From Mobula hypostoma (lineage: Eukaryota): a stretch of 64,000 nt of DNA. The stretch lies in NCBI RefSeq assembly GCF_963921235.1, contig NC_086107.1:46314001-46378000 (forward strand), read 5' to 3'. Both the position numbers and the translations under genes were made by a program. Below the pieces are notes generated by a model. It saw only the letters and a program-made list of their open reading frames with translations, was not told the origin of the DNA and did not search any database. The first letter of the stretch is position 1. Every line of letters starts with the position of its first letter. Of the stretch, positions 31,768 through 64,000 are shown one piece after another.

Positions 31768-31819
31768 ATGGGAATCTTAAGTCTGTCCGCCCTTGTGATG
31801 TCTTCCATTTTATATTCAG
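31768..31819 (+). CDS. ncr3lg1-like: B7-H6-like gene exon 1, signal peptide (MGILSLSALVMSSILYS-G)
   Basis: Strong Kozak ATAATGG, hydrophobic core, and donor CAG|GTAAGA in phase 1 matching the IgV exon. Confidence 0.8.
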
Positions 31820-37087: not shown

Positions 37088-37426
37088 GTGCTTTGGAATT
37101 GGAGATATTTTCCTCTCCACTGGAAGTTTCAGTAAATGAAGATGTTCTTCTAAAATGCATATACAGTAAACCAGAACATGATCTCAGCCATGTAGCTGTT
37201 CAATGGTCTTATAAATCTCAAACATCTCAGAAGGAACTGTATATATTTAATGGAGGGATTCATCAACCTAACAGAAGCGGTGCACAGATTTTTGAAGATG
37301 CATTACAGAATGGAAATGCTTCACTTTACCTCCCGAAAGTACAACTTAATGAAGAAGGAAATTATACCTGCACTGTTTATCTCACCCCAAATAAAGGTGA
37401 AAAGACTTCAAAGATGCTTGTTTCAG
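37088..37426 (+). CDS. ncr3lg1-like: B7-H6-like gene exon 2, IgV domain
   Basis: AG/GT-bounded, 339 nt, phase 1-1. Has canonical C, W and GNASLYLPKVQLNEEGNYTCTVYLTP.K, which closely resembles the human B7-H6 V-domain segment as recalled (GDASLRLP.IQLEEAGEYRCEV..TP.K). Confidence 0.9.
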
Positions 37427-41604: not shown

Positions 41605-41889
41605 TCAAACCAAAAGTCAATGTATTTATGCAAAAAGAGCAGAACTTTGCAATATGTGAAGTAAAGGAATTTTATCCAAAGGAAATTACAGTCAGATGGT
41701 TAAAAGTACTAGATGAAAAAGTGGAAGATATTTCAAAAGATCAGTCTATTGATGATATTGTTATGGACCAAAGTGGGACATTTAGTCTTACCACTAAAGT
41801 AAGAGTAGAACCGATGGTGAGTAGTTCTGCCATATACATCTGTACAGTGAAGCACAAAGAGTTCCATGGAAATTTTACACTGACTAAAG
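41605..41889 (+). CDS. ncr3lg1-like: B7-H6-like gene exon 3, IgC1 domain
   Basis: Strong acceptor and G|GTAAG donor, 285 nt, phase 1-1; C1-set motifs CEVKEFYPKEITVRW, SGTFS and YICTVKH. Confidence 0.92.
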
Positions 41890-42383: not shown

Positions 42384-42488
42384 CAGAACAAGAACGAAGT
42401 AAGCTGACTGGTGGAATTATCTTTGGCATTATCATGCTACTTTGTGTTCTGGGTTTTGGAATTTGTATCTGGAAGAAAAAATCTAAAG
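42384..42488 (+). CDS. ncr3lg1-like: B7-H6-like gene exon 4, transmembrane (AEQERSKLTGGIIFGIIMLLCVLGFGICIWKKKSK)
   Basis: TAGCAG acceptor, G|GTAAC donor, 105 nt, phase 1-1; about 23 hydrophobic residues followed by a basic stop-transfer cluster. Confidence 0.88.
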
Positions 42489-43499: not shown

Positions 43500-44170
43500 T
43501 TGGCATCAGAGATACAAGAGATTCTGGAGATGCTGAAAATCCAGAGTAACACACACAAAATGCTGAAGGAACTCAGCAGGCCACACAGCATCCATGCAGA
43601 AGAATAAACAGCTGATATTTAGAACAAGAATGATTTATCAGGACTGGAAAGAGAGGGGAAAGAAGCTAGAATAAGTGGGGAAGAGAAGGAATAGAAGCTA
43701 GCAGGTGATAAATAAAAGATGCCAGGTGAGGAGTGAAGTTTAGTGGATTGGTGAAGTGTGAATCTGGGAGATGGTATGTGGAAAAGGTAAAGAAGAAAAG
43801 AAGGATAATGGATCACGGGAGAAGGAGGAGGACGGGCACCAGAGGGAGTTGAGGAGAAGAAATGGGATAAGCGAGGAGTCCGATTGGGGAATGGAAGCAA
43901 AGAGAAAGAGACGAGGAGAAATTAGTGGAGGTTAGGGAATTCAAGTTCATGTTGTCAGGTTGGAGACTCCTCGGATGGAATATGAGGTGTTGCTCCTCCA
44001 ACCTTAGACTGGCCTCATTGAGGCAGTAGAGGAGGCCATTAATCAACATGTTGAAATGGGAATGGGGAGTAGAACTAAAATGGTGGCCACCAGGAAAACC
44101 AGCCTGTTGTGGCAGTCAGAACGAACCTCCAATCTACATCAGCTCTCATTGATATAGAGGAGGCCACACT
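43500..44170 (-). mobile_element. Penelope-like 3' fragment
   Basis: RLEEQHLIF...LQP..MN; a related fragment sits at the equivalent position at 52790-53010. Confidence 0.7.
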
Positions 44171-44769
44171 GTGTTTCTCATCACAACATATCTACCTTCA
44201 TATGTCTACCTTCATATTAAAGACAAACTTGAATAACTCAGTGTTCCCTTCATTAAATTATCAGATGGTAGATATAAATAACACCCCACTATTTCACATT
44301 TCTCTGTTAAGCTTTGGATGAACATTTATTTTGTCTGGTTCTATTTTTTTAAAACAAGACACAGTACATTCAGCTAATATTGTGTAAATTTAATACTAAT
44401 TAAATAAAGTCAACATAATGTTGGAAAGTAATCAATAATGGTGATGAAAACATTTAATATTTTACTATGTAAATACGATTTTCAATACTTGCTTCCTGTT
44501 TACTACACTTGGATGGAGAAAACCTTCCCACTAAACAGTTATCAAATTTATTTTAGATCTGATAAAATACCATTTATAATCTAATTGCAAGCCTTTAGTC
44601 TGTTTTATGTATGAAATGCACATAAAAAGTTTTTGGATATCCTTTAAGTTGTTTACACCTATTTCAAGGGAATATCTCACCACTCAGCAAATGGGATCAA
44701 ACAGTTCAATATGCAAATAACCTCAGTTCAATTATCATCTTCTGTGTGTGAGTCTACATAATATTCACC

Positions 44770-46250
44770 CCTTCAATGTGCTATTTTATACACCCAGGAT
44801 ATTTCAAACTGGACACCAGACAGTTATCCATTGGGAAAAGCAACTGCAGCTTCTAAACTAACCAATCACAATGGAAGTGACTTTTGACAATCAGAATAAG
44901 GCCCACCCCCACAGGACACTCCATCCTTCGAAAGTTCCAAATGTGATGATCCAACCCTCAGACTAGTATGACTCTCACGGACTCCTAAGTTATATATAAA
45001 CCACAAGAGCACAATACTCAGTGCTGTAAACCCAATAGTCACTTCCAGTGTGCTATAGTAGTCCATCAGCCCTTCTGTGCCCCAAAAGTTCACCAGCCCC
45101 ACCCTGGAGTGTAATAGCCAATAAGCTGGACCCCACTTACTTTTATGCATGGACTCTGAGGTATGATCTACCAGGTGAGTGATGTTCACCAACCCATCAG
45201 GAAAGTAGGTGCTGCGTTCTTAACCAACAACAGGACAAGTGCCACCTTCCCTTGTGAACAGGTAATCCAAGGCCATCAAAATCAGTTCCTGGGACAGTCT
45301 GGTCATGCCATGCTGAGAAAGACTATCATTCAAAATATCCCTCCTTTGTCATAGCTTTCTTACTGACCAGCATGGGCAAAGTGCTCATCCAGGTAACTGG
45401 GGTGGCATATAAATGGCACCACATATCAATCACACCACCCTATCGCAACCACAGGTCGGTTTGGGATCCAGGAAGTGCCATTCAGCATCCAACCAGTGCT
45501 CAGCTTCACAACACCATTTGGCATAGACACAGCTGTCCAAGGATACTGTTCCTTCTCACACTTGCCATCCACCTTGCACCTTGTTCCTGTACTCAACATA
45601 CCAGCCACACCAACTGTCAGGTGGGGAAATCAGTAAGAGTCAGGATATTCTAATTATACAAATGGTACACAGGTATAGACCAGCCCAGCCCTAAAACACT
45701 CACTCCACCAAGGCTATTGAGGCTCAAGTCTCTTTAAGTCTGTTACCATACTCTGGGTCAGGGTTTGGCTGGAAGACTACTCCTTCCCAGTTCCCCCAAA
45801 ACAGAGTACAAAAACCCGAGAAACCAGATAATACCCTCACAGTCTTTTCCCTTTCAAAAGGATCAATATCAGTGTCTCCCCTTCCTTGATGATGTAAGGA
45901 GTCTTCATACAAATTTAGCAATCTGACTATTAATCCAGTGTGCAAATTTGAACACCATCCCCAGAAATGTACCACACGATCTCCCACCACAAATCACCAT
46001 CCAACACTTTGCCATTCTGTAATGCAGGGAGATACAAATGCACGTGCTCCTGATTAGCCACTGGTTATTTAGAAAATACAACAATAGTACTCCAAGAATT
46101 GGTCCCCAAGTGCTAAATTCCCTCTGAGATGTGGGCATCTCATATCCAGAATAAAGTTGCCCAAATTTCTACTAAATTTCAACTCAAATTTCATATGGCC
46201 ATTATGAAATGGGTCACCCTAAACCAATAATACGGAGAAACAAGTAACGA
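44770..46250 (-). mobile_element. Endogenous retrovirus env remnant (gamma-type TM subunit)
   Basis: The - strand reads LMALDYLFTREGGTCPVVG*ERSTYFPD...NITHLVDH (immunosuppressive-domain-like, with decayed CX6CC), then a hydrophobic anchor TIGFTALSIVLLWFIY. The 5' extent is uncertain. Confidence 0.75.
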
Positions 46251-46411
46251 AGTAACATATTAAGACACAGTAAACATGCAACAGATTTAGAAAAGAAGAA
46301 AGGAAGTAACTGACTAAATGGAATCAAGTAACAGAGTAACTGATTAAACACAAAGCACAAATCTGTCAGTACTTCCAGTTGAACTCTGTCTTCTTGTGTG
46401 TTTCCCCCTAG

Positions 46412-46846
46412 CTGTCAGTCTGTGGTTTTGTATTGCCATGTGTTCCTGTCGCCACTCCTGCTCTGGCCCCTGTGTTACAGAGTACTCCGTCTGTTTCTCA
46501 TTATTACCTGTATTACTGCCACCTGTGCCTCATTGTGCTCCACCTATCATCTGCCTCCCTGTTTATTGCTCTGTGTATTTCAGTCCTGTGGTTTCAGTTG
46601 TTTGTTGCCAGATAGTGCTAGTTAATTTTCCTGAGCCTTTCCAGCATTCGTATCTATACTCTGTCTGTCTGAATATCAACTCTGCCTATTTCCCTATTCT
46701 GCATTTTTTGGATTTCTCTGGATCTTTTGATCTCTGCCTAAACTTTGACGCTGACTTTGTTTGCACCTTGGGATTTGTTACACAGTTAATATCACTGTGT
46801 GTACAGTACTGGGTCTACCATTGGATCCCTGCTCCCGTGCCGTGAC
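46412..46846 (+). mobile_element. Probable solo LTR
   Basis: TGTCA...GTGACA ends and pyrimidine-rich body; no clear TSD. Confidence 0.5.
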
Positions 46847-46859
46847 AAAATCCCAGGCT

Positions 46860-49200
46860 GTACTCCTCTTCTTTAAAACTTCCCATGGAACTGCAAAAAC
46901 TTAAAACAGTTGATTTCTCATAGAGAAATAAGGAGGGTGAACAGTCAGAGGTCATGGTCCCTGTAGGTACCAATGACATGGGTAGGATGAGTGATGAGGT
47001 TCTGCATAGGGAATTAGGAGCTAAGCTAAAGGGCAGAATCTCGAGGACTGTGATCTCAGGATTTCTACCCATGCCATGCACTTCTGAGACTGGAATTAGG
47101 AATATTATATAACTTAATATGTGCTATGGAGTAGGTGTAGGAGGATGGACATAAGATCTTTGGATCATTGGCTACTTCCAGGGGAAGGTGCGACCTGTAC
47201 AGAAGGAATAGTTTGCATTTGAACAGGAGGGAGACTAATATCCTAGTGGGAAGGTTTGCTCATGCTGTGTGGTGGGGTTTAAGCTAGAAATGCAGGGCAA
47301 TGGAAATCAGAGCACCAGGACAGTCAGTGGAGAGGTTCTGGAGGCAAATGTTTGTAAGACCCCAGACAAAGTCAGCAATCAAAAGTTTGAGTATGGTGCG
47401 ACTAGTCTCCTGAGCACATATTTCAAACAAGAAATATCACAGGAGCTCAGAGCATGAATCATCACCTGGAATTATGACATTGCAGTCATTAGTGAGACTT
47501 GGTTGCAGGAGGGGCAGGACTGGCAAATCAGTATTCTGGGGTAGCATTGTTTTAGACGTGACAGAGTGGGAGGGATTAAAGGAGAAGTGGTGACATTACT
47601 AGTCAGGGAAGATGTCACAGCAGTGTCCCGTCAGGACAGACTGGAGTACTCGACTGGTGAGGTTTTATGAGCAGAACTGAGAAATAAAGCTATGATCAAG
47701 TTAATGGGGCTATATTACAGACAACCCAGCAGTCCTAGGGATTTAATGGACCAACTGTGTAAAGAGATCGCAGACTTTTGCAAGAAACAAGGTTGTTATA
47801 GTAGGTGACTTTAACTTTCCACATATTGACTGGGAAAGCCCTACCGTAAAAGGACTAGATGGGATAGTTTGTCAAATGTGTTCTGGGAAGTTTTCTTCAT
47901 CAGTATGTAGAAGTCCGAATAACAGAGCATACAAACTGGATCTGCTATTAGGGAATCAGACAAGTCAAGTCACAGAGGTTTGTGTAGGGTTTGCATCCAG
48001 TGACTACAATGCTATTATTGTCAAAGGAAATATGCAAAGAGACAGGCCTGGTCTGCAGGTTGATATTCTAAATTGGAGAAAGGCCAATTTTGATGGTATC
48101 AGAAATGATTCAGCAAGTGTGGATTGGGACAAGCTGTATTCTGGCAAAGGCGTATTTGGAAAGTGGCAGGCCTTCAAAAGCAAAATTTTGAGAGTGCAAA
48201 GCTTGTGCATGGCAGTCAGAATAAAAGGTAAAGATAGCAAGTGTAGGGAACGTTCGTTTTCAAGAGATATTGGTTAAGAGAAAAAGGTGCATAGCAGGTA
48301 TAGGCAAGTAGGAACAAATGAGGTGCTTAAGGGAGTACAAGAAATGCAAGGAAACACTTAAGAAAGAAATCAGGAAGGCTGAAAGAAGGCGTGAAGTTGC
48401 TCTAGCAGACAAAGTGACAGAGAATCCTAAGGGATTCTACAGATATGTTAAGAGCAAAGGGATTGCGAGGGACAAAATTGGTTCTCTGGAAGACTAGGAT
48501 AATAATCCAAGTGTGAAGCCAAAACAGATGGAGGAGATCTTAAATGCATTCTTTGCATCTATTTTTACTTTGGAGTTGGATGCAAAGTCTATAGATGTGA
48601 GGCAAAGCAGCATCAACTTCATGGACCCTGTACAGATTACTGAAGAGAAGGTGCTTGTTGTCATGAGGTAAATCAGAGTGGATAAATCCCCAACACTGAA
48701 GGTGTTCCCTTGGAACATAAGGGAGGTAAGTACAGAAATTGCTGGAGCCCTAGCAGAAATATTTAAAACATCCTTAGAGACAGGAAAGGTACCAGAGGAT
48801 TGGAGAATAGCCATATTGTTTCACTATTTAAAAAGGATCTAAACAGAAAACAGGAAATTATAGACCAGTGAGTCTGACATTAGTTGTGGGAAAATTAGCA
48901 AAAGGTATTCTTAGGGACTCGACATCTAAGTATTTGGGTAGTCATGGACTGATAAAGGACAGTCAGCATGGCTTCGTGAGTGGTAGGTCATGTCTAACCA
49001 ATCTTGTATAGATTTTCGAGGAAGTTATCAGGAAAATATAGGAAGGTAAGTCAGTGGACGTTGTCTCCATGGACTTCAACAAGGCATTTGACGAAGTCCG
49101 TCATGGGAGGCTAGTCAGGAAGGTTCAGTCACTCAGCATTCAGGATGAGGTAGTAAATGGGATGTGACATTGAGAAGCCAGAAAGTTGTAGTAGAGTGTT
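46860..49200 (+). mobile_element. CR1 LINE, ORF1 esterase to RT remnant
   Basis: VGTND (SGNH-type ORF1), YDIAVISETWL (APE endonuclease) and GFVSGRSCLTNLV (RT). Confidence 0.85.
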
Positions 49201-49696
49201 GCAGGACTTTGGCAGACCCTGCCAAAGGGTCTCTACCTGAAATATCGACGGTACTCTTTTCCATAGATGCTGCCTGGCCTGCTGAGTTCCTCCAGCATTT
49301 TGTGTGTATTGCTTGGATTTCCAGCATCTGCAGATTTTCTCTTGTTTGTGACTTTGTATATAAAATAATGTTTGAGCCTCCAACAATACATCTGGCCTAC
49401 CACTCGAATGACTTCTTATAAGACTCATCAAAACTGAAAAGGAATTGGAACAAAGTACAACCTCATATGGGCAATTTCATCCACCCACTGTAAGCCTAAC
49501 ATGATGGCAACCAATTCTGCTGTCTATACTGGTACTGACGAGTAAGTCATTACTTTACTACTACCTGTAATTCAGGCACAAAAATACACAGCAACATTCC
49601 CAGTTAAATTATGTTTTGGTCCATCTGTAAAAATGGATAACATTCCATAATTCTCCTGAATATATAGATGAACCAGCAGACACAATCTCTTGTGTC

Positions 49697-49790
49697 AGAT
49701 TGAAGAATATACTTTAAAGCTGGGTCACACTTCGCATGACCCCTTGTGGCAAGGATCTGGCAGCTGCAGCGTCTGCAGGCAGCTACATTG
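49697..49790 (+). pseudogene. Terminal-exon copy Y0 with its upstream acceptor region lost
   Basis: Homologous to 51021-51070, but the upstream sequence is unrelated and the TAG stop reads TTG. Confidence 0.6.
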
Positions 49791-49939
49791 TTGGATATAT
49801 ACATCGATCTCCTTTTGAACCGAAACGTGAAAAAACAACCTCACATTTTTTTAAGATATAAAGTTCACCAGTACTCTGATTTTTAGATAAACTTGAATAA
49901 CTCATACTGTGTTCCCTCCATTAATGATGAGGTCTTTGT

Positions 49940-50300
49940 AGGTCAGGGTTGACCATGGATGTTACATGCTAGCTGTCTAGATATGCAAGCCCGGGCAGTA
50001 CAATACGGAGAGCAAGCTGTTGTCCATGTAGCAAGTTCACCCTCTCCACACATCTGATGAACCCGAAGGAACTGCAAGGACTGATACAGTTTGGCACCAG
50101 CAGCATCGCAGGAGATGTCAGTCAGCATTGAACTCAATACAGGACTGCCTTAGGGACTCCAGCTCTGGTTTTGTCCCATGGGGTTTACTCGCAAAGCCTT
50201 CCTGTGAGCGGATATACTGCAGCTGCAAGACAGCAGAGGTTTGAGATCAGAGTTTTCCTTCTCCTCGATGACTTACCAACCACAGCTGATGAGCCCGGAT
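49940..50300 (-). mobile_element. RTE-related non-autonomous element, duplicated at 54100-54460
   Basis: Shares a domain of about 100 bp with the SINE body; present at the same position in both duplicated units. Confidence 0.6.
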
Positions 50301-51020
50301 TAAATTATTAATATAGATAGTAAATGTAATTTAGCACACCACTATTTCACAATTTTCTATTAAGGTTTCAAAAACCTATTTACTGTGTCGGGTTCTATCT
50401 TTTTTAAACAATGTCATTGTACATTCAGCTAATATTGCGTATATTTAATACAAATTAAATAATGTAAACATGATGTTGGAAAGCAATCATTAATGGGCAT
50501 GAAAACATTTAACATCTTACTATACAAATACAATTGTCAGCAGTTGCTTTCTGTTCACTGCACTTGGGTGGTGAAAACTTAGATCAAATAAAATACCATT
50601 TAATATCGAATTGAAAACATTTAGTGTACTGCATGTGTGAAATGCACATAAATAGTGTTTCAATATCCTTTAAGTTGTTCAAGTATCATGGAGATGTCTC
50701 ACTAGTCATGAAGTGGAATCAAATACTTCAAGATGCAAATAACTTCTGCTCAATTGTCATTTTCTGTGTGTAATTCAACACAATTTGACATCACTATGGT
50801 GTTGACAGTTCATTTATAATTGATAAATGTGGCAAATATGTACTATATAACTCATTTTTTTCATTTACAATAAAACAAACAGCAAGCCCTGCACTGAAGT
50901 GTAAACCACACATAGCATGATATGTCCTAACTGGGAAAGAATATTTTACTCTCTGATCAGGCCTGCCTCATTTCCCATTGCTACTGTTGAAGATGTTTCC
51001 TTCACCCTGATTCACTGCAG

Positions 51021-51070
51021 AGACTGAAGAGTCTATTTTGAAGCTGAGTCACGTTTCCCATGATCCCTAG
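51021..51070 (+). CDS. ncr3lg1-like: Candidate terminal exon Y1 (ETEESILKLSHVSHDP*)
   Basis: Acceptor TTTCCTTCACCCTGATTCACTGCAG, phase 1, TAG stop, AATAAA at 51180-51185. Confidence 0.55.
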
Positions 51071-51919
51071 TGGCAATGACCTGGCACCTGCAGCGTTTGC
51101 AGGCAGCCATCATTGGATATTTACAAAAATCTTCTTTTGAACCAAAATGTGCAAAAACTAATCTAAAAGTTTTTTTAGAAATAAATTTCGCCAGTACTCC
51201 GACTTTTAGCATTTCCGCTAATTGCGTAAATTCAGCACATATTTAGTGCAACAAAAATGCAGGAAATCCAATTTCTGGACAGAAATTATAGTTTGGTGTT
51301 AAAACAAAGAAGTTTTAAGTTCAGATATGGACAGAATTTGATATATTAAAAGAGACCATTGATTATTAACTTGGCTCTATATCAAGAAATAAAATTCTCT
51401 ATATGGATATACATTTTAAGTAATTATAAAAGCAAGATGTGGAAAGACTTAAAATGTTAAAATATTTAAAATTTAAAATATCCTCCCGAACCAGGGTAGA
51501 TAATCTCACTCATGCCAACTCTGAGTTGATTCCACAACCAATGGACACTTTCAAGGACGATGTAACTCACGATCTCAGTATTATTTATTTACTTATTTTT
51601 TTATTTACACAGTGCATCTTTTGTGAACATTGGTTGTTTGTCAGTTTTTGATTGTGTATACCTACTGTTTTTCTTCATTCAACTCTGAATGTCTGCAAGA
51701 AAACAATTCTCCAGGTAGTATATGATGACATATAGAGTATGAACTTTTATAGTAAATTTACTTTGAACATTTTGTAGTTATTTGCAACAAATACAGAATA
51801 GCTCAATGGGGAAAAGTCTGAAAATTCAAAACCTGCACTCTGAATTAAGTGTTCATACATTTTATACATCGTACAGAAAGCTTAGATGCATATATATAAT
51901 TAAATATCTTTTAAACTAG

Positions 51920-52012
51920 CATCTGTAGATACCAGTAAGTGTGAATCAATGGAAAGAGGAGATGAAACCTACCAACCGCTTTTGACCAGTCAGGATCTCA
52001 AACTTCCATTAG
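51920..52012 (+). CDS. ncr3lg1-like: Cytoplasmic exon Z1 (ASVDTSKCESMERGDETYQPLLTSQDLKLPL)
   Basis: TAG acceptor, AG|GTAAGT donor, 93 nt, phase 1-1, open frame, YxxL motif. Confidence 0.7.
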
Positions 52013-53858
52013 GTAAGTGATTGACGTGTCTGATTATATTAAAGGTAAAATGTCCATTTTTAATGTTGCACTCTGAACACACAAAATTAAATAAATATGT
52101 TAAACACAGTTTAGACGTTCCCAAACTTGAGAAAAAAGCTCCTTCAATGTCAAGGTAGTAATATATTTTGTATGCACTTTCTATACGTTGTATAGAAATA
52201 CTGAACTAGGGAACATGATTCTCAAAACAATTAGAGACTGGAGTGAGCACCAGGGATTTCAGGTCAGCTTCTCTTTTGGTTGATGAATGTTTAATCTACC
52301 TCCCTTCAAATGTCATCTCAATTAAAGACTGAAGTTTAATATTTTAGCTGGTAGCTACACTACTTTAGATCAAAAACAAGAATGTGAAACAAAATCACTC
52401 ACATACTGAGTGATTTCAAAGTCATTTAAACAGGTTTTAGCTGAATACTCACTATCATCAACAAACTCTGTTTAAGCATCCAAATTTTCGAAGTTTACTT
52501 CAAAAATATTTTTAAAAGTCTGGCCATTCTGATATCCTCTGTTTATTAAATGCAAACATCAGTGTAAATAGTGAAGCCTTTGATTCACATTTGATGAATC
52601 TAGAACTGATTTTGCTGTTCACAAATCCTCTTGCCATCTATTCATTATAAATTGTTCATCCGAAGAATCTCAAACAGTATGGTATCAATGTACTAATGAT
52701 GGTTCAACACATTCTGATCAATTGCACATCATAAAAACAAATTTATGTCATTTTCTTCACAGCATATGTCTTGGCTCAAAATATTGACTTTTTTTTTACC
52801 TCCATTTATGCTCCCTGGTTTGCTGAGTTCCTCCAGCATTTTGTGTGTGTGCTGAAGATTTATAGCATCTGCAGAATTTTGTGTTGAAACAGGAATGGCA
52901 AGAACAATTAAAATGGTGGGCACTGGGAAATCCTGCTCATTGTGGCGGTCATAATGAAGGTGACGATAAAGTGGTCCTACAATCTATATCGGGTCTCACC
53001 AATACAGAGGAGGCCATACTGTGATTCTTATCACAGTGTGCCTGATGTCTACATTCATATCACAGACAAAGTTGAGTAACTCACACTGCGTCTCCTCGAT
53101 TGAAATATTAATATAGATGGTATATATAAATACCATCCCACTATTTCACATTTCTCTATTAAGCTTTGAATGAACCATTTATTGGTTTCTGGTTCTATTT
53201 TTTTTTAAACACAGATACAATACATTCAGCTAATATTATGTAAATTTAATACAAATTAAATAAATTTACCACAATGCTGGAAAGTAATCATTATGGTGAT
53301 GAAAAACCTTAACATTTTACGACTAAAATACAATTATCGACCCTTGCTTCCTGTTCACTGCACTTGGGTGGTGAAAAATTTGCACTGAACAGTTACCTAA
53401 TAGTATTTTATATCTAATAAATATATAATTTAATATCCAATTGCAAGCCTTTAGTCTGTTTTATGTGTGAAATGCACATTAATAGGTTTTGGATGTCATT
53501 TAAATTGTTTACACCTGTTTCAAGGGGATATCTCACCAGTCAGCAAATGGGATCAAACAGTTCAACATGTAAATAACCTCAGCTCAATTGTCATTTTTTG
53601 TGTGTAATTCTACACAATTTGACATCACCAAGGTGTTGACTGCTCATTCTTAACCTATAGTTGAAAATGTTGGAAATATCATGTATAACTTTATCTTTTC
53701 ATTTACAATAAAACAAAGAGCAAGCCCTGCGCTCATGTATAAACTACACATAGCATAATGTGTCCAAACTGAGAAAGAATATTTTACTCTCTGATCAGGC
53801 CTTTCTCATTTCCCATTGCTGGTGCTGAATGTGTTTCCTTCACTCTGATTCACTGTAG

Positions 53859-53878
53859 AGAGTGAAGAGTCTACTTGA
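53859..53878 (+). CDS. ncr3lg1-like: Candidate terminal exon Y2 (ESEEST*)
   Basis: Acceptor TCACTGTAG and phase 1; first Y copy after Z1; a 1-nt deletion relative to Y1/Y3 creates an early TGA. Confidence 0.5.
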
Positions 53879-54888
53879 AGTCTGGCTCACACTTCCCATG
53901 ATTCCTAGTGGCAAGGATCTGGCAGCTGCAGCGTCTGCAGGCAGCCATTGTTGGATATGTACATAGATATCCTTTGAACTGAAACGTGAGAAAACAACCT
54001 AACATTTTTTTAAGAGATGAAGTTCACCAGTACTCTGACTTTTCGATAAACTTGAATAACTCATACTGTGTTCCCTCCATTTATGATGGGGTATCTGTTG
54101 GTCAGGGTTGACCATGGATGTTACATACTAGATATCTGGATGTGCAAGCCTGGGCAGTACAATACGTAGAGAAAGCTGTTGTCCACGTAGCAAGCTCACC
54201 CTCTCCACACATCTGATGAACCCGAAGGAACTGCAGAGACTGATACAGTCTGGCACCAGCAACGTCGCAGGAGATGTCAGTCAGCATTGAACTCAATATA
54301 GGACTGCCTTAGGGACTCCAGCTCTGGTTTTGTCCCATGGGGTTTACTCCCAAAGCATTCCTGTGAGCGGATATACTGTAGTTGCAAGACAGCAGAGGTT
54401 TGAGATCAGAGTTTTCCTTCTCCTCGATGAGTTACCAAAGACAGCTGATGAGCCCTGGTGAAGTTATTAATATAGATAGTAAATATAACTAGCACACCAG
54501 TATTTCACAATTTTCTATTAAGGTTTCAAAAATCAATTAATTGTGTCGGGTTCTATGGTTTTTGTTAAACAAACTCATTGTACATTCAGCTAATATTGTG
54601 TATATTTAGTACAAAAGTTTGTGTAAATTAAATAATGTTAACATGATGTTGGAAAGCAATCATTAATGGTCATGAAAACATTTAACATCTTACTATTCAA
54701 ATACAACAATCAGCACTTGCTTCGTGTTCAAGGACTTGGGTGATAAAAACATTTCCACTGAAGAGTTTTCAAGTATTATTTTAGATCTAATAAAATACCA
54801 ATTAATACCTAATTGAAAACCTTTAGTGTGCTTTACGTGTGAAATGCACATAAGTAGTGTTTTAATGTCCTTAAAGTTGTTCAAATTT

Positions 54889-57505
54889 AACCATATAACA
54901 ATTACAGCACGGAAACAGGCCATCTCGGCCCTTCTAGTCCATGCCAAACTCTTACTCACACTAGTCCCACCAACCTGCACTCAGCCCATAACCCTCCATT
55001 CCTTTCCTGTTCATATATCTATCCAATTTAACTTTAAAGGACAACATCGAACCTGCCTCAACCACTTCTGCTGGAAGCTCGTTCCACTCAGGTACCACTC
55101 TCTGAGTAAAAAAGTTCCCCCTCATGTTACCCCTAAACTTTTGCCCTTTAACTCTCAACTCATGTCCTCTTGTTTGAATCTTTCCCACTCTCAATGGAAA
55201 AAGCCTATCCACACCAACTCTATCTATCCCCCTCATAATTTTAAATATCTCTATCAAGTTCCCCCTCAACCTTCTACACTCCGAAGAATACAGAACCAAC
55301 TTGTTCAACCTTACACTGTAACTTCAGAGGTGAAACCCAGGTCACATTCTAGTAAATCTTCTCTGCACTCTCTCGAGTTTGTTGACATCTTTCCTATAAT
55401 TCGGTGACCATAATTGTACACAATACTCCAAATTTGGCCTTACCAATGCTTTGTACAATTTCAACATTACATCCCAACTCCTATACTCAATGCTCTGATT
55501 TATAAAGGCCAGCATACCAAAAGCTTTCTTCACCACCCTATCCACATGAGATTCCACCTTCAGGGAACTATGCACCATTATTCCTAGATCCCTCTGTTCT
55601 ACTGCATTCTTCAATGCCCTACCATTTACCATGTATGTCCTATTTTGATTAGTCCTACCAAAATGTAGCACTTCACATTTATCAGCATTAAACTCCATCT
55701 GCCATCTTTCAGCACACTCTTCTAACTGGCCTAAATCTCTCTGCAAGCTTTGAAAACCCACTTCATTATCCACAACTCCACCTATCATACGCATATTTAC
55801 AAATCCAAATTACCATCCCATCATCCAGATCATTAATATTTATGACAAACAACATTGGACCCAGTAAGATCCCTGAGGCAACACCACTAGTCACCGGCCT
55901 CCAATCTGACAAACAGTTATCCACCACTACTCTCTGGCATCTCCCATCCAGCCACCGCTGAATCCATTTTACTACTTCAATATTAATACCTAATGATTGA
56001 ACCTTCCTAACTAACTTTCCATGTGGAACCTTGTCAAAGGCCATATTGAAGTCCATATAGACAACATCCACTGCTTTATCCACGTCAACTTTCCTAGTAA
56101 CCTCTTCAAAAAATTCAATAAGATCTGTCAGACATGACTTTCCACGCACAAATCCATGTTGACTGTTCCTATTCAGATCCTGTCTATCCAGATAATTATA
56201 TTTACTATCTCTAAGAATACTTTCCATCAATTTACCCACCACTGACGTCAAACTCACAGGCTGATAATTGCTAGGTTTTATCTTAGAACCCTTTTTAAAC
56301 AATGGAACAACATGAGTAATATGCCAATCTTCCGGCACCATCCCCGTTTCTAATGACATTTGAAATATTTCTGTCAGAGCCCCTGCTATTTCTACACTAA
56401 CTTCCCTCAAGGTCCTAGAGAATATCCTGTCAGGACCCGGAGACTTATCCACTTTTATATTCCTTAAAAGCGCCAGTACTTCCTCTTCTTTAATCATCAT
56501 AGTTTCCATAACTACCCTACTTGTTTCCCTTACCTTACACAATTCAATATCTTTCTCCTTAGTGAATAGTGAAGAAAAGAAATTGTTCAAAATCTCCCCC
56601 ATCTCTTTTGGCTCCACACATAGCCGTCCACTCTGATTCTCTAAGGGACCAATTTTATCCCTCACTATCCTTTTGCTATTAATATAACTGTAGAAACCCT
56701 TTGGATTTATTTTCACCTTACTTGCCAAAGCAGCATAGAACATAGAAAAGCTACAGCACAATACAGGCCCTTCGGCCCACAAAGCTGTGCCGAACATGTC
56801 CTTACATTAGAAATTACCTAGGGTCACCCATAGCCCTCTATTTTTCTGAGCTCCATGTACCTGGCCAGGAGTCTCTTAAAAGATCCTATTGTATCCGCCT
56901 CCATCACTGTTGCCAGCAACCCATTCCACGCTCACACCATTCATATCTTCTTTTAGCTTTTCTAATTTCTTTCTTAAGATTCTTTTTACATTCTTTATAT
57001 TCCTCGAGCATCTCATTTACTCCATGCTGCCTATATTTATTGTAGATCTCCCTCTTTTTCCGAACCAAGTTTCCAATATCCCTTCAAAACTATGGCTCTC
57101 TCAAACTTTTAACATTTCCTTTCAACCTAACAGGAACATAAAGATTCTGTACCCTCAAAACTTAAATGACCTCCATTTCTCTATTACATCCTTCCCATAA
57201 AACAAATTGTCCCAATCCACTCCTTCTAAATCCTTTCGCATCTCCTCAAAGTTAGCCTTTCTCCAATCAAAAATCTCAACCCTGGGTCCAGTCCTATCCT
57301 TCTCCATAATTATATTGAAACCAATAACATTGTGATCACTGGACCCGAAGTACTCCCCAACACATACCTCCATCACCTGACCTATCTCATTCCCTAACAA
57401 GAGAACCAACACTGCCCCTTCTCTAGTTGGTACCTCTATGTATTGCTGCAAAATCTATCTTGCACACATTTTACAAACTCCAAACCATCCAGCCCTTTTA
57501 CAGTA
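54889..57505 (-). mobile_element. CR1 LINE (endonuclease-RT-3' end) with a nested CR1-tail fragment at about 56727-56890
   Basis: ORFs 57155-57451, 55766-56797 (QHGFVRGKSCLT, YMDFNMAFDKVPH) and 55342-55794; interrupts a duplicated intron segment that resumes at about 57506. Confidence 0.92.
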
Positions 57506-57837
57506 TGGTGATGTCTCACTAGTCATGAAATGGGATCAAATAATTCACGATGCAAATAACTTCAGCTCAATTGTCATTTTCTGTGTGTAATTCGACACAA
57601 TTTGACATCACTATGGTGTTGACAGTTCATTTTTAATTGATAAATGTTGCAAATATGTACTATATAACATATTTTTTTCATTTACAATAAAACAAACAGC
57701 AAGCCCTGCACTCAAGTGTAAACCAGACATAACATGATATGTCCTAACTGGGAAAGAATATTTTACTCTCCGATCAGGCCTGCCTCATTTCCCATTGCTG
57801 ATGTTGAAGATGTTTCCTTCACTCTGATTCACTGCAG

Positions 57838-57887
57838 AGATTGAAGAGTCTACTTTGAAGCTGAGTCACGTTTCCCATGATCCCTAG
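57838..57887 (+). CDS. ncr3lg1-like: Candidate terminal exon Y3 (EIEESTLKLSHVSHDP*)
   Basis: Intact acceptor, phase 1, TAG stop, AATAAA at 57996-58001. Confidence 0.45.
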
Positions 57888-58407
57888 TGGCAATGACCTG
57901 GCACCTGCAGCGTTTGCAGGCAGCCATCATCGGATATTTACATAAATCTCCTCTTGAACCAAAATGTGCAAAAACTTATCTAGATGTTTTTTAGAAATAA
58001 ATGTTGCCAGTACTCTGACTTTTAGCATTTCCGCTAACTGGGTAAATGCAGCACGTATTTGGCGTAACAAAAATGCAGGAAATATAAGTTCGACAGAAAT
58101 TATAGTTTGATATTAAAACAAAGAAGTTTTGTTCAGATATGGACAGAATTTGATATATTAAAAGAGAGCATTTAGTATTAACTTGGCTCTATATCAAGAA
58201 ATAAAATTCTCTATGTTGATATACATTTTAAGTAATTATTAAAGCAAAATGTGGAAAGACTAAAAATGTTAAAATATTTAAAATTTTAAATATCATCCTG
58301 AACCAGGGTAGATAATCTCACTCATGCCAACTCTGAGTTGATTCCACAACCGAAGGACACTTTCAAGGACTATGTAACTCACGATCTCAGTATTATTTAT
58401 TAACTTA

Positions 58408-59241
58408 GGTGACGGGGTCCTGAAATACCCCAATGAATTGTGCATCCAAAAGAGAGACAGAGAGAGTTGTGGAACACAAGACACCTTGTTAAAAAGAGAG
58501 AGAAAAAGAGAGAGAGAGAGAGAGAGAGAGGCGAAGACTGCTCACAGTTTGTTTATACCTTCTACAAGGACAGGACACTGGCAGTTTCCAAGTTCTTACA
58601 GAGAGAGAAGGGAGGAGCTTGTTGATGGACAGCTAGAATTCAGCACGGTGAGATAAATAGAAGGTCAGCTGTTACACCTACAGACACATGGTTTTGGACA
58701 CTGAATGAGCTTTGTTGTGCCAACAGAAAAAGTGGGTTTTGGAGGATCGATCAGGCGGATTGATCAGTGGCTCTCACAGTGTGAAAAGGGAGTGACTGGT
58801 GGGGAGTTATTTGTGTGACCAACCTTTGCCTGGGTTGATAATTCCACCACAGAAGAACGGTCCCCTCTGTTGTAGTCACAGTCGGTGACTTCTAAAGGAT
58901 TTTGGAGGACAACGGGAAGATCAGTGGCGTCAGCTCACCTGAAGACTCAAATCACTCCCTCTCTCCCTCTCTCAATCACTACTCAACTCAATACCACGAA
59001 CTGAACTGAACTTTACCCATCATTGTAAGACTATCAATTTACCCCTAGACTTGAAGAAGCTTTAGTTTCATAGATTTCCACACTTATATACATATATTCA
59101 TTGAAAACCCGTTTGACTTATCTGCATTTATATTACTGTATTGTGTAGTTACTAATAAATACCATTAGTTAATAGCAATACTGGACTCCAAAGTGTTTTC
59201 CATTTCTGCTGGTTCTTTAACCTGTCACGGGGTACGTGACA
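58408..59241 (+). mobile_element. Solo LTR with 4-bp TSD (Gypsy-like)
   Basis: (G)GTGACGGGG...GTACGTGACA flanked by CTTA at 58404-58407 and 59242-59245; the empty site is seen near 51590. Confidence 0.85.
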
Positions 59242-59513
59242 CTTATATTTTTTTTACACAGTGCTTCTTTTTTGCACATTGGTTGTTTGTCAGTTTTTGA
59301 TTGTGTATACCTACTGTTTTTCTTCATTCTACTACGAATTTTAGAGTAAATTTACTTTAAACATTTTGTAGTTGTTTGCAACAAATACAGAATAGCTCAA
59401 TGGGGAAAAGTGTGAAAATTCAAAACTTGCACTCTGAATTAAGTGTTCATACATTTTATATATTGTGTAGAAAGGTTAGATTCATATGTATAATTAAATA
59501 TATTTTAAACTCG

Positions 59514-59606
59514 CATCTGTAGATACCAGTCAGTGTGAATCAATAGAAAGAGGAGATCAAATCTGCCAACCGCTCTTGACCAGTCAGGATCTCAAACTTC
59601 CAACAG
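59514..59606 (+). pseudogene. Cytoplasmic exon copy Z2 (acceptor TAG to TCG, Tyr to Cys)
   Basis: 93-nt paralogue of Z1 with open frame and intact donor, but mutated acceptor. Confidence 0.7.
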
Positions 59607-60356
59607 GTAAGTGATTGACATGTCTGATTATGTTAAAGGAAAAAAATCCATTTTTAATATTGCACTCTAAACACACAAAATTATATAAATATGTTAAACA
59701 CAGATTCGACATTCCCAAACTTGAGAAAAATCTCCTCTAATGTCAAGGTGGTAATATATTTTGTATGCACTTTCTATACGTTGTATAGAAATACTGAACT
59801 GGGGAACATGATTCTCAAAACAATTAGAGACTGGGGTGAGCACCAGGGATTTCAGGTCAGTTTCTCTTTTGGTTGATGAATGTTTAATCCACCTCCCTTC
59901 AAATGTCATCTCAATTAAAGACTGAAGTTTAATATTTCAGCTGGTAGCTACACTACTTGAGATCAACAACAAGAATGTGAAACAAAGTCACTCGCATACC
60001 GAGTGATTTCATAGTCATTTAAACATGTTTTAGCTGAACACTCACAATCATCAACAAACTCCGTTTAGGGATCCAAATTTTCCAAGTTTACATCAAAAAT
60101 CTTTTTAAAATTCTGGCCATTCTGATATCCTCTGTTTATTAAATGGAAACATCAGTGTAAATAGTGAAGCCTTTGATTCACATTTGATGAATTGACAATT
60201 TTACAATAAGACAAAGAGCAAGCCCTGTACTCAGGTATAAACTTCACACAGCATGATGTGTCCGAACTGAGAAAGAATATTTTGCTCTCTAATTAGGCCT
60301 GTCTCGTTTCCCATTGCTGGTGGTGAAGGTGTTTCCTTCACTCTGATTCACTGCAG

Positions 60357-60376
60357 AGAATGAAGAGTCTACTTAA
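60357..60376 (+). CDS. Candidate terminal exon Y4 (ENEEST*)
   Basis: Intact acceptor TCACTGCAG, phase 1, TAA stop. Confidence 0.35.
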
Positions 60377-60788
60377 AGGCTGGGTCACACTTCCCGTGAT
60401 CTCTAGTTGCAGCATCTGCAGGCAGTCATCATTAGATATTTACCTAAATCTCCCTTTGAACCAAAATGTGAAAAAACTAACCTGACAATTTTTTTGGAGT
60501 TAAATTTCACCAGTGCCCTGATTTTTTAGCATTTCCACTAATTGCATAAAGTTAGCACATAGTTTCTGTACCATAAATAGCAGAAGTCTAATTTCTGGAG
60601 AGAAATTATAGTTTGGTGTTAAAGTAAAATATGTCTTAACTTCAGGTATGGGCAGAATTTCATATATTAAAAGAGAGCATTTAAAAAGAACTTGAACTTG
60701 ACTGTGTATCAGGAAAAAAATAATCTCTCTGTGTGGACATGTTAAGTAATTTTCAAAGCATGTGAAGGCTTAAAATTTTAAAAACACT

Positions 60789-61686
60789 TGTTATGTACCC
60801 CTGGGTTCCTTTTTGCTGGGAACTGTCACTTTAAGGCACAAAAAAGAACTGAGACTAACTTTTGAATTTCTGCTCAGAGAGAGAGGGGCAAGAGTCTGCC
60901 TTTTAGCTCACGTTTACTCTTTTACAAGGACACTGACTACTGTTGTCAGCTTTTTGGTTGCCATGGAAAAAGAGAAAGTTTTTCAACACAGACAACTTGT
61001 TAAAAAGAGAGAGAAAGAAAGAGAGAGCGAGGTGAAGACTGCTCATAGTTTGTTTATACTTTCTGCAAGGACACTGGCAGCTTCCAAGTTCTTACAGAGA
61101 GAGAAGGGAGGAGCTGCTTGATGGACAGCTAGTATTCAGCACGGTGAGATAAACAGAAGTCAGGTGTTAGACCTACAGACACATGGTTTTGGACACTGAA
61201 TGAGCTTTGTTGTGCCCACAGCAAGGTGGGTTTTGGAGGATCGATCAGCCGGATCAATCAGTGGCTTTCACAGTGTGAAAAGGGGTGACCGGTGGGGAGT
61301 TATTCGTGTTGCAACCCTCGCCTGGGTTGACAATTTCACCACAGAAGAATGGTCCCCTTTGTTGAGGTCACAGTTGGTGACTTCTAAAGGATTTCGGAGG
61401 ACAACGGGAAGATCGACAGCTTCAGCTCACCTGAAGTCTCAAATCTCTCCCTCTCTCTCACTCTCAATCACTATTCAACTCAATACCACGAACTGAACCG
61501 AACTTCACTCATCATCGTAAGAATATCTATTTACCCCTAGACTTGAAGAAGCTTGGGTTTTCGTATATTTCCACACTTACTTATGCATAATCATTGCTAA
61601 CCTGTTTGATATATCTGCATTTATATTACTGTATTGCATAGTTACTAATAAATACCATTAGTTAATAGCAATATTGGACTCCAAAG
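60789..61686 (+). mobile_element. LTR of the same family as 58408-59241, 3'-truncated by a Penelope-like insertion
   Basis: Starts TGTTATGTACCCC; 61000-61686 is highly similar to 58490-59190. Confidence 0.8.
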
Positions 61687-62710
61687 TAACACTCACAACA
61701 CGCTGGAGGAACTCAGCAGGTCAGGCAGCATCTGTGGAAACGATCAGTCAACGTTTCGGGCCGGAACCCTTTGTCAGGACTGAAGAGGGAAGGGGAAGAG
61801 GCCCTATAAAGAAGGTGGGGGGAGGGTGGGAAGGAGAAGGCTTGTAGGTTCCAGGTGAAAAACCAGCAAGGGGAAAGATAAACAGGTGGGGGAGGGGAAG
61901 CAGGGAGGTGATAGGCAGGAAAGGTGAAGAAGGGATAGGGGAAAACAATGGGTAGCAGAAGGAGACAGAACCATGAGGGAGGTGATAGGCAGTTGGGGGA
62001 GGGGGTAGAGTGAAATAGGGATAGGGGAAGGGAGGGGGAGGGAATTACCCAACGTTGGAGAATTCTATGTTCATACCAAGGGGCTGGAGACTACCTAGAC
62101 AGTATATGATGTGTTGCTCCTCCAACCTGAGTTTAGCCATCCCGAATGGGAATGGGAAGTGAAATTGAAGTGGGTGGCAACAGGAAGATCCTGTTTGTTG
62201 TGGCGGACGGAGCGGAGGTGCTCGACGAAGCGGTCCCCCAATCTGCATCGGGTTTCACCGATGTAGAGGAGCCCGCACCGGGAGCACCGGTTGCAATAGA
62301 TGACCCCAACAGACTCACAAGTGAAGTGTTGCCTCACCTGAAAGGACTGTTTGGGTCCCTGAATGGTGGTAAGAGAGGAGGTGTAGGGACAGGTGTAACA
62401 CTTACGCTTACAGGGATAAGTGTTGGGTGGGAGATCCGGGGGGAGGGAAGTGTCGATCAGGGAGTCACGGAGGGACCGATTCGTGGTTTCCTTTTTGCCG
62501 TCATCAACGATGCCCTCACCCCATCCTCCCGCCACCACAACAGGGACAGAGTTCCCCTTGTCCTCACCTACCACCCCACCAGCCTCTGGATCCAGCACAT
62601 TATCCTCCGCAATTTCCACCACCTTCAACAGGACCCCACCACTAAGCACATCTTTCCCTCGCCATCCCTCTCGCTTTCCGTAGGGTTTGGTCCCTCTGTG
62701 ACTCCCTGAT
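61686..62710 (-). mobile_element. Penelope-like element 3' region (GIY-YIG) with an inverted 5' segment
   Basis: FQVRQHFTCESVGVIYCNRCSRCGLLYIGETRCRLGDRFVEHLRSV on the - strand; 62475-62710 is in the opposite orientation. Confidence 0.9.
61745..61782 (-). ncRNA. Minimal type I hammerhead ribozyme remnant in a Penelope-like terminal region
   Basis: The - strand reads CAGTC CTGACAA A GGG TTCCGG CCC GAAA CG TT GACTG: stems I and II pair, stem III is palindromic ACGT, and there is one core change (G8A). Confidence 0.7.
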
Positions 62711-63004
62711 CCTACTCTGAATATTTGCAAGAAACTGAATCTCAAGGTTGTATATGATGACATATATAGCATGTACTTTGATTACGAATTTACATTGAAA
62801 ATTTTATATTTATTGGCACCAGTGACATATACGTTATATGGTTACGGAGGAACTCAATGGGGAAAACGTGCAAATTCATAAATTGAACTCTGAATTAAAC
62901 GTTCATACAGTCATATTTTACATATATTGTGTAGAAAGCTTAAATTCATATATATAAAATTACTTAATATGTATTATTGTGTAATTATATAACTTTTAAG
63001 CTGG

Positions 63005-63085
63005 CACCTATAGATACCAGTTAGTGCGAACCAATGAAAAGAGGAGCTCAAACCTGCCAACCACTTACTCACAGACTACATGTCA
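63005..63085 (+). pseudogene. Cytoplasmic exon copy Z3 (no acceptor, in-frame TAG, donor region deleted)
   Basis: Paralogue of Z1, with flanks homologous over about 62740-63760. Confidence 0.7.
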
Positions 63086-64000
63086 GTGATTGACATGTCT
63101 GATTATATTAAAGGCAAAATGTCCATTTTTAATGGTGCACTCTGAACACACAATATTATGTAAAGCTGTTAAACACAGTTTAGATATGTTCTCAGAATTA
63201 AAGAAAAAGCACATATACTGTAATGTCAATGTAGTTCTATATGTTGCACACACTTAACATACATTGTACAGAAATACTGAACTGGGGGATATGATTTTCA
63301 AAACTTTCCATGACTAGATTCAACACCAGGGAATCAGGTCAGTTTCTCTTCTGGTTGATGAGTGTTCAATTCACTTCCCTTCAAATGTCACCTCTACTAA
63401 AGGCTTAAGTTTAATATTTCAGCTGGAAGCTACATTTCTTTACATCAAAAACAAGAATGGAAAGCAAAATCACTTGCATAATGGGTGATTTCATAGATAG
63501 CCTTTGTCCAGGTTTTAGCTAAGTGGTCACAATCGTCCTTTCAAAGATCCAAATTTGCAAAGTTTAATTCGTAATTCTTAAAAAAATGATTCTGGCTATT
63601 CTGATATCCCCTACTTATTAAAATATAAAGATAAGTGTAAATGGTAAAGCCTTTGATTCACATTTGATGAATCTAGAACTGATAATGCTGTTAACGAATC
63701 CTCTTACCATCCATTCATTATAAATCTGAGGAGCGTCAAATAGTGTGGTATCAATGTACGAAGAGGCAACGTAAGAAAACAATCTCAGTTTGTTCACATA
63801 CATTTAGTTTGGGTTAAGTTAGACAACAGCAGACGAGAACTTAATGTATAGCTCTCAAAGTTATAATCAATTTATTTTGTAAATTGTGTTTAAGGATGAA
63901 TGCACAGGAAAGAAATGAGATGAGAAATACATACCAAATTATGGAGAAACTCAGCAAGTCAGGCAGTGTCTATATAGAAAAATTAACAGTCAATGCTTCA

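Follow-up and report, generated by a model that had tools for sequence, protein, structure and literature searches.

A B7-H6-like gene of Mobula hypostoma with tandem copies of a cytoplasmic-tail exon

The window analysed here (the whole stretch of 64,000 nucleotides from contig NC_086107.1) holds part of a gene already present in the NCBI annotation of Mobula hypostoma, where its isoforms are named 'tapasin-related protein-like' (X1-X10) and 'IWS1 homolog' (X11). The annotated gene range is 66,585 bp, of which ~34 kb lies past the window end. A 391-residue public protein with long-tailed relatives is 100% identical across the V exon; this protein and its ten sister isoforms are all NCBI models from M. 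hypostoma, that is, predictions. Inside the window, tblastn placed the annotated isoforms only on the leader, V, C1 and transmembrane (TM) exons and on two cytoplasmic exons, termed Z1 and Z2 (Table 1), and exons past position 64000 are known from the annotated proteins only. The encoded product is a type I membrane protein with a leader, an IgV domain, an IgC1 domain and a TM segment.

Table 1. Features of the locus in window coordinates (+ strand unless marked).
Feature	Position	Strand	Remarks
Leader exon, coding part (MGILSLSALVMSSILYS plus 1 nt)	31768..31819	+	Donor gtaaga, phase 1; tblastn of annotated protein
IgV exon	37088..37426	+	Phase 1-1; Pfam V-set 2.8e-13; PDB matches CD276, B7-H6
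IgC1 exon	41605..41889	+	Phase 1-1; Pfam C1-set 1.2e-11
Connecting-peptide, transmembrane and KKKSK exon	42384..42488	+	tagCAG tandem acceptor (42384/42387)
Intron DNA homologous to that 5' of the Y copies	44049..44762	+	Self-BLAST
Y0	49697..49783	+	Without acceptor AG and without stop; not an exon
Y1, exon-like intron segment	51021..51070	+	cag/AG, 16 codons, TAG; AATAAA at 51180
Z1, real first cytoplasmic exon (ASVDTSKCESMERGDETYQPLLTSQDLKLPL)	51920..52012	+	93 nt, phase 1-1; 100% match to all annotated isoforms
Y2	53859..53878	+	Acceptor tag/AG; TGA after 6 codons; no nearby AATAAA
LINE-type retrotransposon fragment between the Y2 and Y3 units	54964..57454	-	RVT_1 2.1e-15, ORF 55769-56806
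Y3, copy closest to Y1 (93.7%)	57838..57887	+	16 codons; AATAAA at 57996
Z2 as used, second cytoplasmic exon (DTSQCESIERGDQICQPLLTSQDLKLPT)	59523..59606	+	84 nt, phase 1-1, internal AG
Y4, decayed	60357..60376	+	TAA after 6 codons; 17-nt deletion; no nearby AATAAA
Z3, dead Z copy	63005..63081	+	Acceptor GG; in-frame stop; deletions

The core of the protein has the architecture of B7-H6/NCR3LG1, with a signal peptide, an IgV domain, a C1-set Ig domain and a single transmembrane helix, the last encoded as a 23-residue hydrophobic stretch followed by KKKSK. An earlier note on this DNA had described a single leader-V-C1-TM set with phase 1 junctions and a B7-H6-like ectodomain, and both descriptions hold: tblastn found no second V, C1 or TM exon in the window and, when the whole ectodomain was compared with solved structures, chains of human B7-H6 ranked best (E 2.4e-23 across residues 14-207), ahead of CD276 (1.5e-15, V only) and TAPBPR (7e-13). 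CD276 ranked first when the V domain alone was the query, whereas B7-H6 ranked first over V plus C1, and the C1 domain therefore decides the ranking. As a whole, the ectodomain is nearer to B7-H6 than to other members of the B7 family. Some variation among annotated isoforms falls within this core. X11 leaves out the IgC1 exon, and X2 is without one Ala because the TM exon has a tandem acceptor.

Behind the TM exon lies an array of five Y segments and three Z copies in the order Y0, Y1, Z1, Y2, Y3, Z2, Y4, Z3. The earlier note had reported this order, phase 1 at all junctions, intact acceptors at Y1-Y4 (cag or tag), AATAAA about 110 nt past the stops of Y1 and Y3 (109 and 108 nt) and a duplication confined to tail sequence behind a single ectodomain, and each of these observations was reproduced. 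The repeats are far above chance, with self-BLAST returning blocks of 500-1000 nt at 74-93% identity. Between the homologous intron stretch at 44049-44762 and Y0 lie ~4.7 kb of transposon debris (44869-49476). An endonuclease-reverse transcriptase fragment lies within this debris at 47747-48274.

The pattern of identities suggests how the array may have arisen. The duplicated block would consist of the first cytoplasmic exon, Z, together with the intron upstream of it, copied in tandem in nested steps. An older step would have given rise to Y4-Z3, about 81% identical to the other copies, and a newer step would have copied a unit of ~7-8 kb [Y0 unit plus Y1-Z1] into [Y2 unit plus Y3-Z2], which are 89-94% identical. 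As Z is symmetrical (phase 1-1), an extra copy could be included with the reading frame intact. Conservation of the exon copies does not exceed that of their flanks: Z1 and Z2 share 91.4% identity in the exon versus 92.7-93.0% in the flanks, and Y1 and Y3 share 93.7% in the Y segment versus 94.7% in the flank.

Z1 and Z2 are used in series. All 11 annotated isoforms read TM-Z1-Z2(DTSQ...)-acidic exons, the last of these outside the window. In RNA contigs, a joint at 52009>51926 ('goes back 84'; depth 949) runs from the 3' end of a Z exon back to where the internal acceptor of a Z exon lies. The contigs were placed at 88% likeness, and the second Z of this joint could in principle be that of a paralogue. 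Contigs from the same run (X1) carry at least two Z2-diagnostic letters (51964 C and 51971 G, depth 595), and depth over the Z1 bin is ~910. The ancestral start of Z2 is at 59514; its homologous acceptor at 59512-59513 now reads CG, not AG, and splicing therefore uses an internal AG 9 nt further in. Z3 also retains the internal AG, followed by DTS and a stop, as well as a GT donor, and is reduced to 77 nt, a length not divisible by three. Z1 (93 nt) and Z2 (84 nt), both phase 1-1, thus form a serial, modular tail of mini-exons. Paralogues and other rays have homologous first cytoplasmic exons, and in one of the paralogues, P0167, two Z exons likewise follow each other, of which the second begins with DTSQ. 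According to the annotation and the RNA contigs, the mRNA of the Mobula gene passes from TM to Z1, on to Z2 through its internal AG, and then to acidic exons of 26 residues each and one of two C-termini, all of these past the window end.

The YQPL motif of Z1 was considered as a key motif and dropped, as its tyrosine is replaced by Cys in most paralogues and in Z2; the di-leucine is retained. Across rays and sharks, conservation of Z is limited to an acidic stretch and the di-leucine behind it; these may therefore act as the sorting or endocytosis signal, rather than the tyrosine.

The Y copies showed no comparable sign of use. Y1 and Y3 would translate to E[TI]EES[IT]LKLSHVSHDP followed by a stop, and this peptide was not found in 195 family proteins, either by motif search or by short-peptide BLAST. 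Searches of the Y regions by tblastn, with 13 relatives and with the last 330 residues of 14 distant ones as queries, returned nothing significant. Two candidate sources were set aside: matches of the 'YTLKL' type, which are last strands of Ig domains with E above 1, and a faint likeness to the 'DAVLK' ending of the family. None of the 11 annotated isoforms uses a Y copy. In RNA run X1, depth was 22 in the Y1 bin and 5.5 in the Y2 bin, compared with 7-20 in intron bins and ~910 in the Z1 bin. Contigs over the 3' part of Y1 bear Y3 letters (depth 16-24) and contigs placed after Z1 bear post-Z2 letters, in both cases as unspliced, low-depth coverage. This RNA evidence is mainly from one run with tissue not stated, and its assembled contigs drop rare variants and thus show presence, not absence.

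Taken together, we consider the region from 44 to 64 kb to be a long intron region behind the TM exon of a B7-H6-like gene, in which Z1 and Z2 are spliced serially and from which the tail continues beyond the window (probability about 0.8). The Y 'exons' are then most likely plain intron carried along with Z, as we infer from the lack of positive evidence for their use. The earlier note had instead proposed that the Y copies are interchangeable last exons, yielding products such as TM-Y1, TM-Z1-Y2 and TM-Z1-Y3. These products found no support, as the gene runs ~34 kb past the array and RNA over Y1 and Y2 is at intron background; both in the annotation and in the one informative run, the Y copies do not appear as alternative last exons of mature mRNA.

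A narrower version of that proposal is that Y1, Y3 or both serve as true last exons in particular tissues or states by way of intronic polyadenylation, giving a short-tailed TM-Y1 protein of 276 residues that has neither the acidic tail nor the exon with the di-leucine and tyrosine. The two segments look the part, with cag/AG acceptors, a good pyrimidine tract, equal 16-codon ORFs and AATAAA 108-109 nt past the stop; such isoforms are often missed in gene annotation, and the use of Y1 and Y3 was judged from just one informative RNA run. Scored by a rough pyrimidine count, the acceptors of Y (0.75) look no weaker than that of Z1, and sequence alone does not explain their skipping. However, this set of features is cheap in the region. 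Between 42.6 and 64 kb there are 229 acceptor-like AGs with a median distance of 14 codons to the stop, and at 114 of them the phase-1 stop has a poly(A) hexamer no more than 300 nt away, such that the combination of AG, short ORF and AATAAA turns up by chance roughly every 190 nt. Moreover, RNA depth over Y1 and Y3 amounts to ~1-2% of that over Z1, the annotated isoforms pass over both segments, and no relative of 268-852 residues from any species has a Y-type ending; a search in any species for short-tailed relatives of ~276 residues found none. The ORF is also not kept among the copies (Y2 and Y4 stop early and Y0 reads through), and the Y segment is conserved no better than its flank. We therefore regard terminal use of Y1 or Y3 as improbable. 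Slightly less probable still is that the duplicated intron block gave rise to rare terminal exons that switch the gene between a full long-tailed ligand and a 276-residue form with almost no tail. True switches of this kind exist: CEACAM1 carries alternative long and short tails with different signalling motifs on one ectodomain, and both are demonstrated mRNAs. This is the type of switch that the earlier note had in mind, whereas its proposed short Mobula forms are without RNA or annotation support.

The decayed copies, Z3 and the Y segments, might instead act as decoy or poison exons that adjust, through premature termination or nonsense-mediated decay, how much full-length mRNA is made. Z3 keeps its internal AG and GT donor with a stop after three codons, and the Y acceptors are intact, but the decayed copies are indistinguishable from neutral decay, and we consider such a role very unlikely. 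An assembly or haplotype artefact, with a true gene bearing one Y and one Z, can practically be dismissed. Assembly errors are common at tandem repeats of a few kb, but the copies are 6-25% divergent, far beyond alleles, and differ in indels and transposon insertions. RNA contigs also hold letters specific to the Y3, post-Z2 and Z1 copies, and the serial Z-Z form recurs in RNA and in a paralogue. The array thus represents ordinary tail growth by exon duplication, and its copies are not exchangeable tail ends.

The broader idea that phase-1 modules generate tail variety did stand, as the gene has 11 annotated isoforms, but the mechanism differs from that proposed. The real variety comes from skipped acidic exons, by which isoforms differ in whole units of 26 residues, and from two annotated C-termini (VTQAKPDEPEM and DAVLK), all of them outside the window.

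Human B7-H6 is a ligand of NKp30 whose tail forms one long stretch carrying ITIM-like, SH2-binding and SH3-binding motifs. Human B7-H6 (NCR3LG1; PDB 3PV6, 4ZSO, 6YJP) and the Mobula protein share a type I layout of one IgV and one IgC1 domain. The Mobula tail, in contrast, is assembled from numerous small exons in phase 1 (93, 84 and 78 nt) and contains acidic repeats, and no similarity between the two tails was seen. A parallel in exon layout is offered by chicken BG genes of the butyrophilin/B7 superfamily, in which an Ig ectodomain is combined with a long tail of many tiny in-frame exons; their number differs from gene to gene, and they undergo alternative splicing or read-through (PMC4046983). 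The 21-nt BG exons code for heptad coiled-coil repeats and sit behind a V-only ectodomain, whereas those of Mobula, at 78-93 nt, code for repeats that are acidic, rich in proline and probably disordered, and follow V plus C1.

Because the gene is already publicly annotated and tail growth by duplicated symmetrical exons is a familiar process, the array is of little importance alone. It does provide a dated snapshot of that process, in which Z2 is already in mRNA through a replacement acceptor, Z3 is dead and the co-carried intron mimics terminal exons. It also serves as a caution that an acceptor, a short ORF and AATAAA in AT-rich introns are no evidence of an exon.

The leader-V-C1-TM core is shared by paralogues in the Mobula cluster (LOC134353701, 'dextranase-like', and LOC134354206) and by orthologues in Hemitrygon, Rhinoraja, sharks and Callorhinchus, with 85-93% identity in rays. 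These paralogues and orthologues likewise have a Z-type first cytoplasmic exon (acidic plus di-leucine), acidic repeat exons and many isoforms; the Y-Z block duplication was seen in this gene only. Most relatives also carry one to seven Ig-like domains of ~140 residues in the tail, unlike any of the 11 isoforms of this gene, and Pfam matched no family on the tails. Long modular tails were found in relatives from chimaeras to amphibians. This wider family of B7-H6-like ligands, with very long, repeat-rich tails that often include Ig-like domains, merits experiments. Among the relatives recovered with the V exon is a frog protein to which NCBI gives the name NCR3LG1.

Z1 and Z2, two of the three tandem copies of the first cytoplasmic-tail exon (Z1-Z3) behind the B7-H6-like ectodomain, are used in series. 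A V-exon search covering 1.8 billion representative proteins returned a 391-residue protein with 100% identity, together with many relatives of 500-1500 residues that carry the V domain at the N terminus. The identical protein is NCBI 'protein IWS1 homolog isoform X11' of Mobula hypostoma, and its ten sister isoforms bear the name 'tapasin-related protein-like X1-X10'. All 11 share one tail start, KKKSK followed by Z1 and then DTSQCESIERGDQICQPLLTSQDLKLPT, which is Z2 entered through its internal AG. After Z2 come EETQANPDEHE... and a series of 26-residue acidic units (AQPKPDEDKGEQQEPPNQDSEENKVD), and the isoforms differ in whole 26-residue units, in the C terminus (VTQAKPDEPEM or DAVLK), in one Ala and, in X11, in a skipped C1 exon. 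The gene range spans 66,585 bp on the chromosome and ends, counting from the leader, about 34 kb past the window; tblastn placed only the leader, V, C1, transmembrane (TM), Z1 and Z2 exons inside the window and all later exons outside it.

Exons and exon-like copies in the window, and the tail domain of relatives (P0179, P0003 and P0008 are fetched relatives of the gene; Y0-Y4 are tandem copies of an exon-like segment)
Feature	Coordinates	Strand	State
Leader exon	31768-31819	+	phase-1 join
IgV exon	37088-37426	+	phase-1 joins; Pfam V-set 2.8e-13
IgC1 exon	41605-41889	+	phase-1 joins; Pfam C1-set 1.2e-11
Transmembrane exon	42384-42488	+	phase-1 join
Y0	49697	+	without acceptor AG; homologous place without stop
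Y1	51021-51070	+	cag/AG; ETEESILKLSHVSHDP then stop; AATAAA at 51180
Z1	51920-52012	+	intact; codes for ASVDTSKCESMERGDETYQPLLTSQDLKLPL
Y2	53859-53878	+	tag/AG; TGA after six codons; without AATAAA
Y3	57838-57887	+	resembles Y1; AATAAA at 57996
Z2	59514-59606	+	homologous acceptor is CG; intact AG lies 9 nt inside, giving exon start 59523; Tyr to Cys
Y4	60357-60376	+	TAA after six codons; deletion of 17 nt
Z3	63005-63081	+	77 nt; acceptor GG; DTS then in-frame stop; deletions
~140-residue tail domain	P0179:304-448; P0003:374-518; P0008, seven copies; others		outside window

The window is gap-free, transposon-rich animal DNA, and tblastn with each exon found no second V, C1 or TM copy in it. 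With V alone as query, CD276 was the top solved relative; with V plus C1, human B7-H6 matched across both domains (2.4e-23) compared with CD276 over V only (1.5e-15). Human B7-H6 is thus clearly the best solved relative of the two domains together, which makes 'B7-H6-like ectodomain', the label used in the earlier note, a fair one. At the TM exon the acceptor is a tandem tagCAG (42382-42389); splicing to its second AG drops one Ala, in line with annotated isoform X2. In isoform X11, the entire C1 exon (41605-41889) is skipped to give a V-TM protein, and the frame is kept because both junctions are phase 1.

RNA from the same species contains the Z-Z junction. Run X1 (a label separate from isoform X1) and three sister runs were aligned to 49600-54900 at 88% likeness, a threshold at which contigs of the Y3 and Z2 copies would land on this interval too. 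One joint goes back 84 nt, leaving at 52009 and resuming at 51926, with 3 letters ambiguous (equivalent to 52012 to 51929), at a depth of 949; this means that the end of a Z exon is joined directly to a Z exon starting at the internal acceptor. A Z piece of depth 595 has C at 51964 and G at 51971, the Z2 letters (Glu to Gln and Tyr to Cys), which are two Z2-specific letters among the differences listed. A paralogue also carries two Z exons, so this joint, although strong evidence, does not point uniquely to the gene in the window.

The earlier note had proposed one ectodomain with interchangeable tails, chosen through alternative last exons that included the Y copies. The modular part of this idea holds, and such in-frame tail exons are already present in public annotation; interchangeable tails, by contrast, are unsupported. 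The Y peptide appears in 0 of 11 annotated isoforms and had no match in family proteins of any species, and a short Y-type tail was absent from relatives of 268-852 residues. In run X1, every word sampled from the C1 exon was present, compared with 4 of 14 words of Y1 and its 3′ flank. Depth by bin was 910 for Z1, 22 for Y1, 5.5 for Y2, 19 for Y0 and 7-20 for unique intron, placing Y1 and Y2 at intron level, with RNA contigs read as evidence of presence rather than of absence. Low-depth contigs on the 3′ part of Y1 have Y3 letters at 4 of 4 diagnostic sites, and a contig past Z1 has post-Z2 letters at 7 of 7; such contigs reflect unspliced RNA from the younger copy at the depth of intron and do not mark an exon.

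Nor do the Y copies themselves provide positive evidence of an exon. Their reading frame is not preserved between copies, and their conservation is no higher than that of the flank (Y1-Y3 identity 93.7%, compared with 94.7% upstream). A 21.4-kb stretch downstream of the TM exon contains 229 acceptor-like AGs, with a median of 14 codons to a phase-1 stop and, at 114 of the 229, AATAAA or ATTAAA within 300 nt. The features of Y1 are of the kind that AT-rich intron yields by chance. Because the Y acceptors are no weaker than that of Z1 by a crude pyrimidine count, we retain intronic polyadenylation at one of Y1 and Y3, rare or confined to certain tissues, as an alternative, albeit an improbable one.

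Repeat finding, self-BLAST and alignments, from which the state of each copy was taken, bear out the array, and the copy order, phases, acceptors and AATAAA distances described previously were all correct. Block duplication is evident. Identity is 88.8% for Y0-Y2 and ~82% for the remaining Y pairs; Z3 is ~81% identical to Z1 or Z2. Read from these pairwise identities, an older duplication would have given rise to Y4-Z3, and a younger one would have copied a ~7-8-kb unit (the Y0 unit plus Y1-Z1) into the Y2 unit plus Y3-Z2, with transposon insertions at 44869-49476 and 54964-57454 probably following the duplications. The second insertion contains RVT_1 (match at 55769-56806, minus strand). An assembly or haplotype artefact is ruled out by copies that are 6-25% divergent and carry copy-specific insertions. 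Retrotransposon reverse-transcriptase/endonuclease fragments occur on both strands at 44869-49476, 54964-57454, 61716-62781 and in much of 1-31000. Thousands of mismatched RNA contigs are drawn to 49954-50307, 51724-51900, 52786-52962 and 54202-54555, marking these segments as dispersed expressed repeats; the highest-depth bins in run X1 are dispersed repeats.

Also evident are the substitute acceptor of Z2, the loss of Z3 as a working exon and, further downstream, a variety of in-frame cassettes. A duplicate Z is probably tolerated in mRNA because the exon is symmetrical (phase 1-1, 93 or 84 nt). Between Z1 and Z2 there are seven replacement changes against one that is silent, and exon identity (91.4%) does not exceed that of the flanking intron (92.7-93.0%), suggesting that Z2 has drifted since the duplication. 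In the first cytoplasmic exon, all that is conserved across rays and sharks is a set of acidic residues with a di-leucine (PLL or SLL) after them, and the tyrosine occurs only in Z1 and Hemitrygon; on this pattern of conservation, we favour the view that Z works mainly through a putative di-leucine sorting signal, with YQPL incidental. The internal acceptor (ctgtag/ATACC; 59512-59523) is also where the second Z exon (DTSQ...) starts in the paralogue P0167 (LOC134354206), so exons of this type may ordinarily possess this second acceptor, rather than Z2 having been rescued by a one-off event. In Z3 (63014-63081) the internal AG survives, as does a GT donor, but the reading frame stops right after DTS and the length is not divisible by three; were this copy ever spliced in, it would function as a poison exon.

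The wider family spans Callorhinchus, sharks, rays, coelacanth, lungfish and amphibians, with proteins of 600-1500 residues and many isoforms. Most relatives have 1-7 tandem copies of a conserved ~140-residue domain C-terminal to the transmembrane helix; the domain is absent from 11 of 11 isoforms of the gene in the window. This domain had no Pfam match, is predicted by AlphaFold2 to be an all-beta Ig-like sandwich (pLDDT 91.4; TM 0.5-0.57 against V-type domains, for example sodium-channel beta subunits) and, by topology, should be cytoplasmic. The mini-exon tails of chicken BG genes, with 13-36 exons of 21 nt and alternative splicing or read-through (PMC4046983), offer a parallel to the family's tail. 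The names 'IWS1 homolog' and 'tapasin-related' stem from the C1 domain and from low-complexity acidic stretches and are no guide to function. One amphibian member carries the NCBI name NCR3LG1. Public annotation calls members of this single family tapasin-related, IWS1 homolog, dextranase-like, retinitis pigmentosa 1-like 1, myb-like protein X, midasin-like and hemicentin-1-like; these labels are misleading, being drawn from acidic low-complexity repeats or from single Ig domains.
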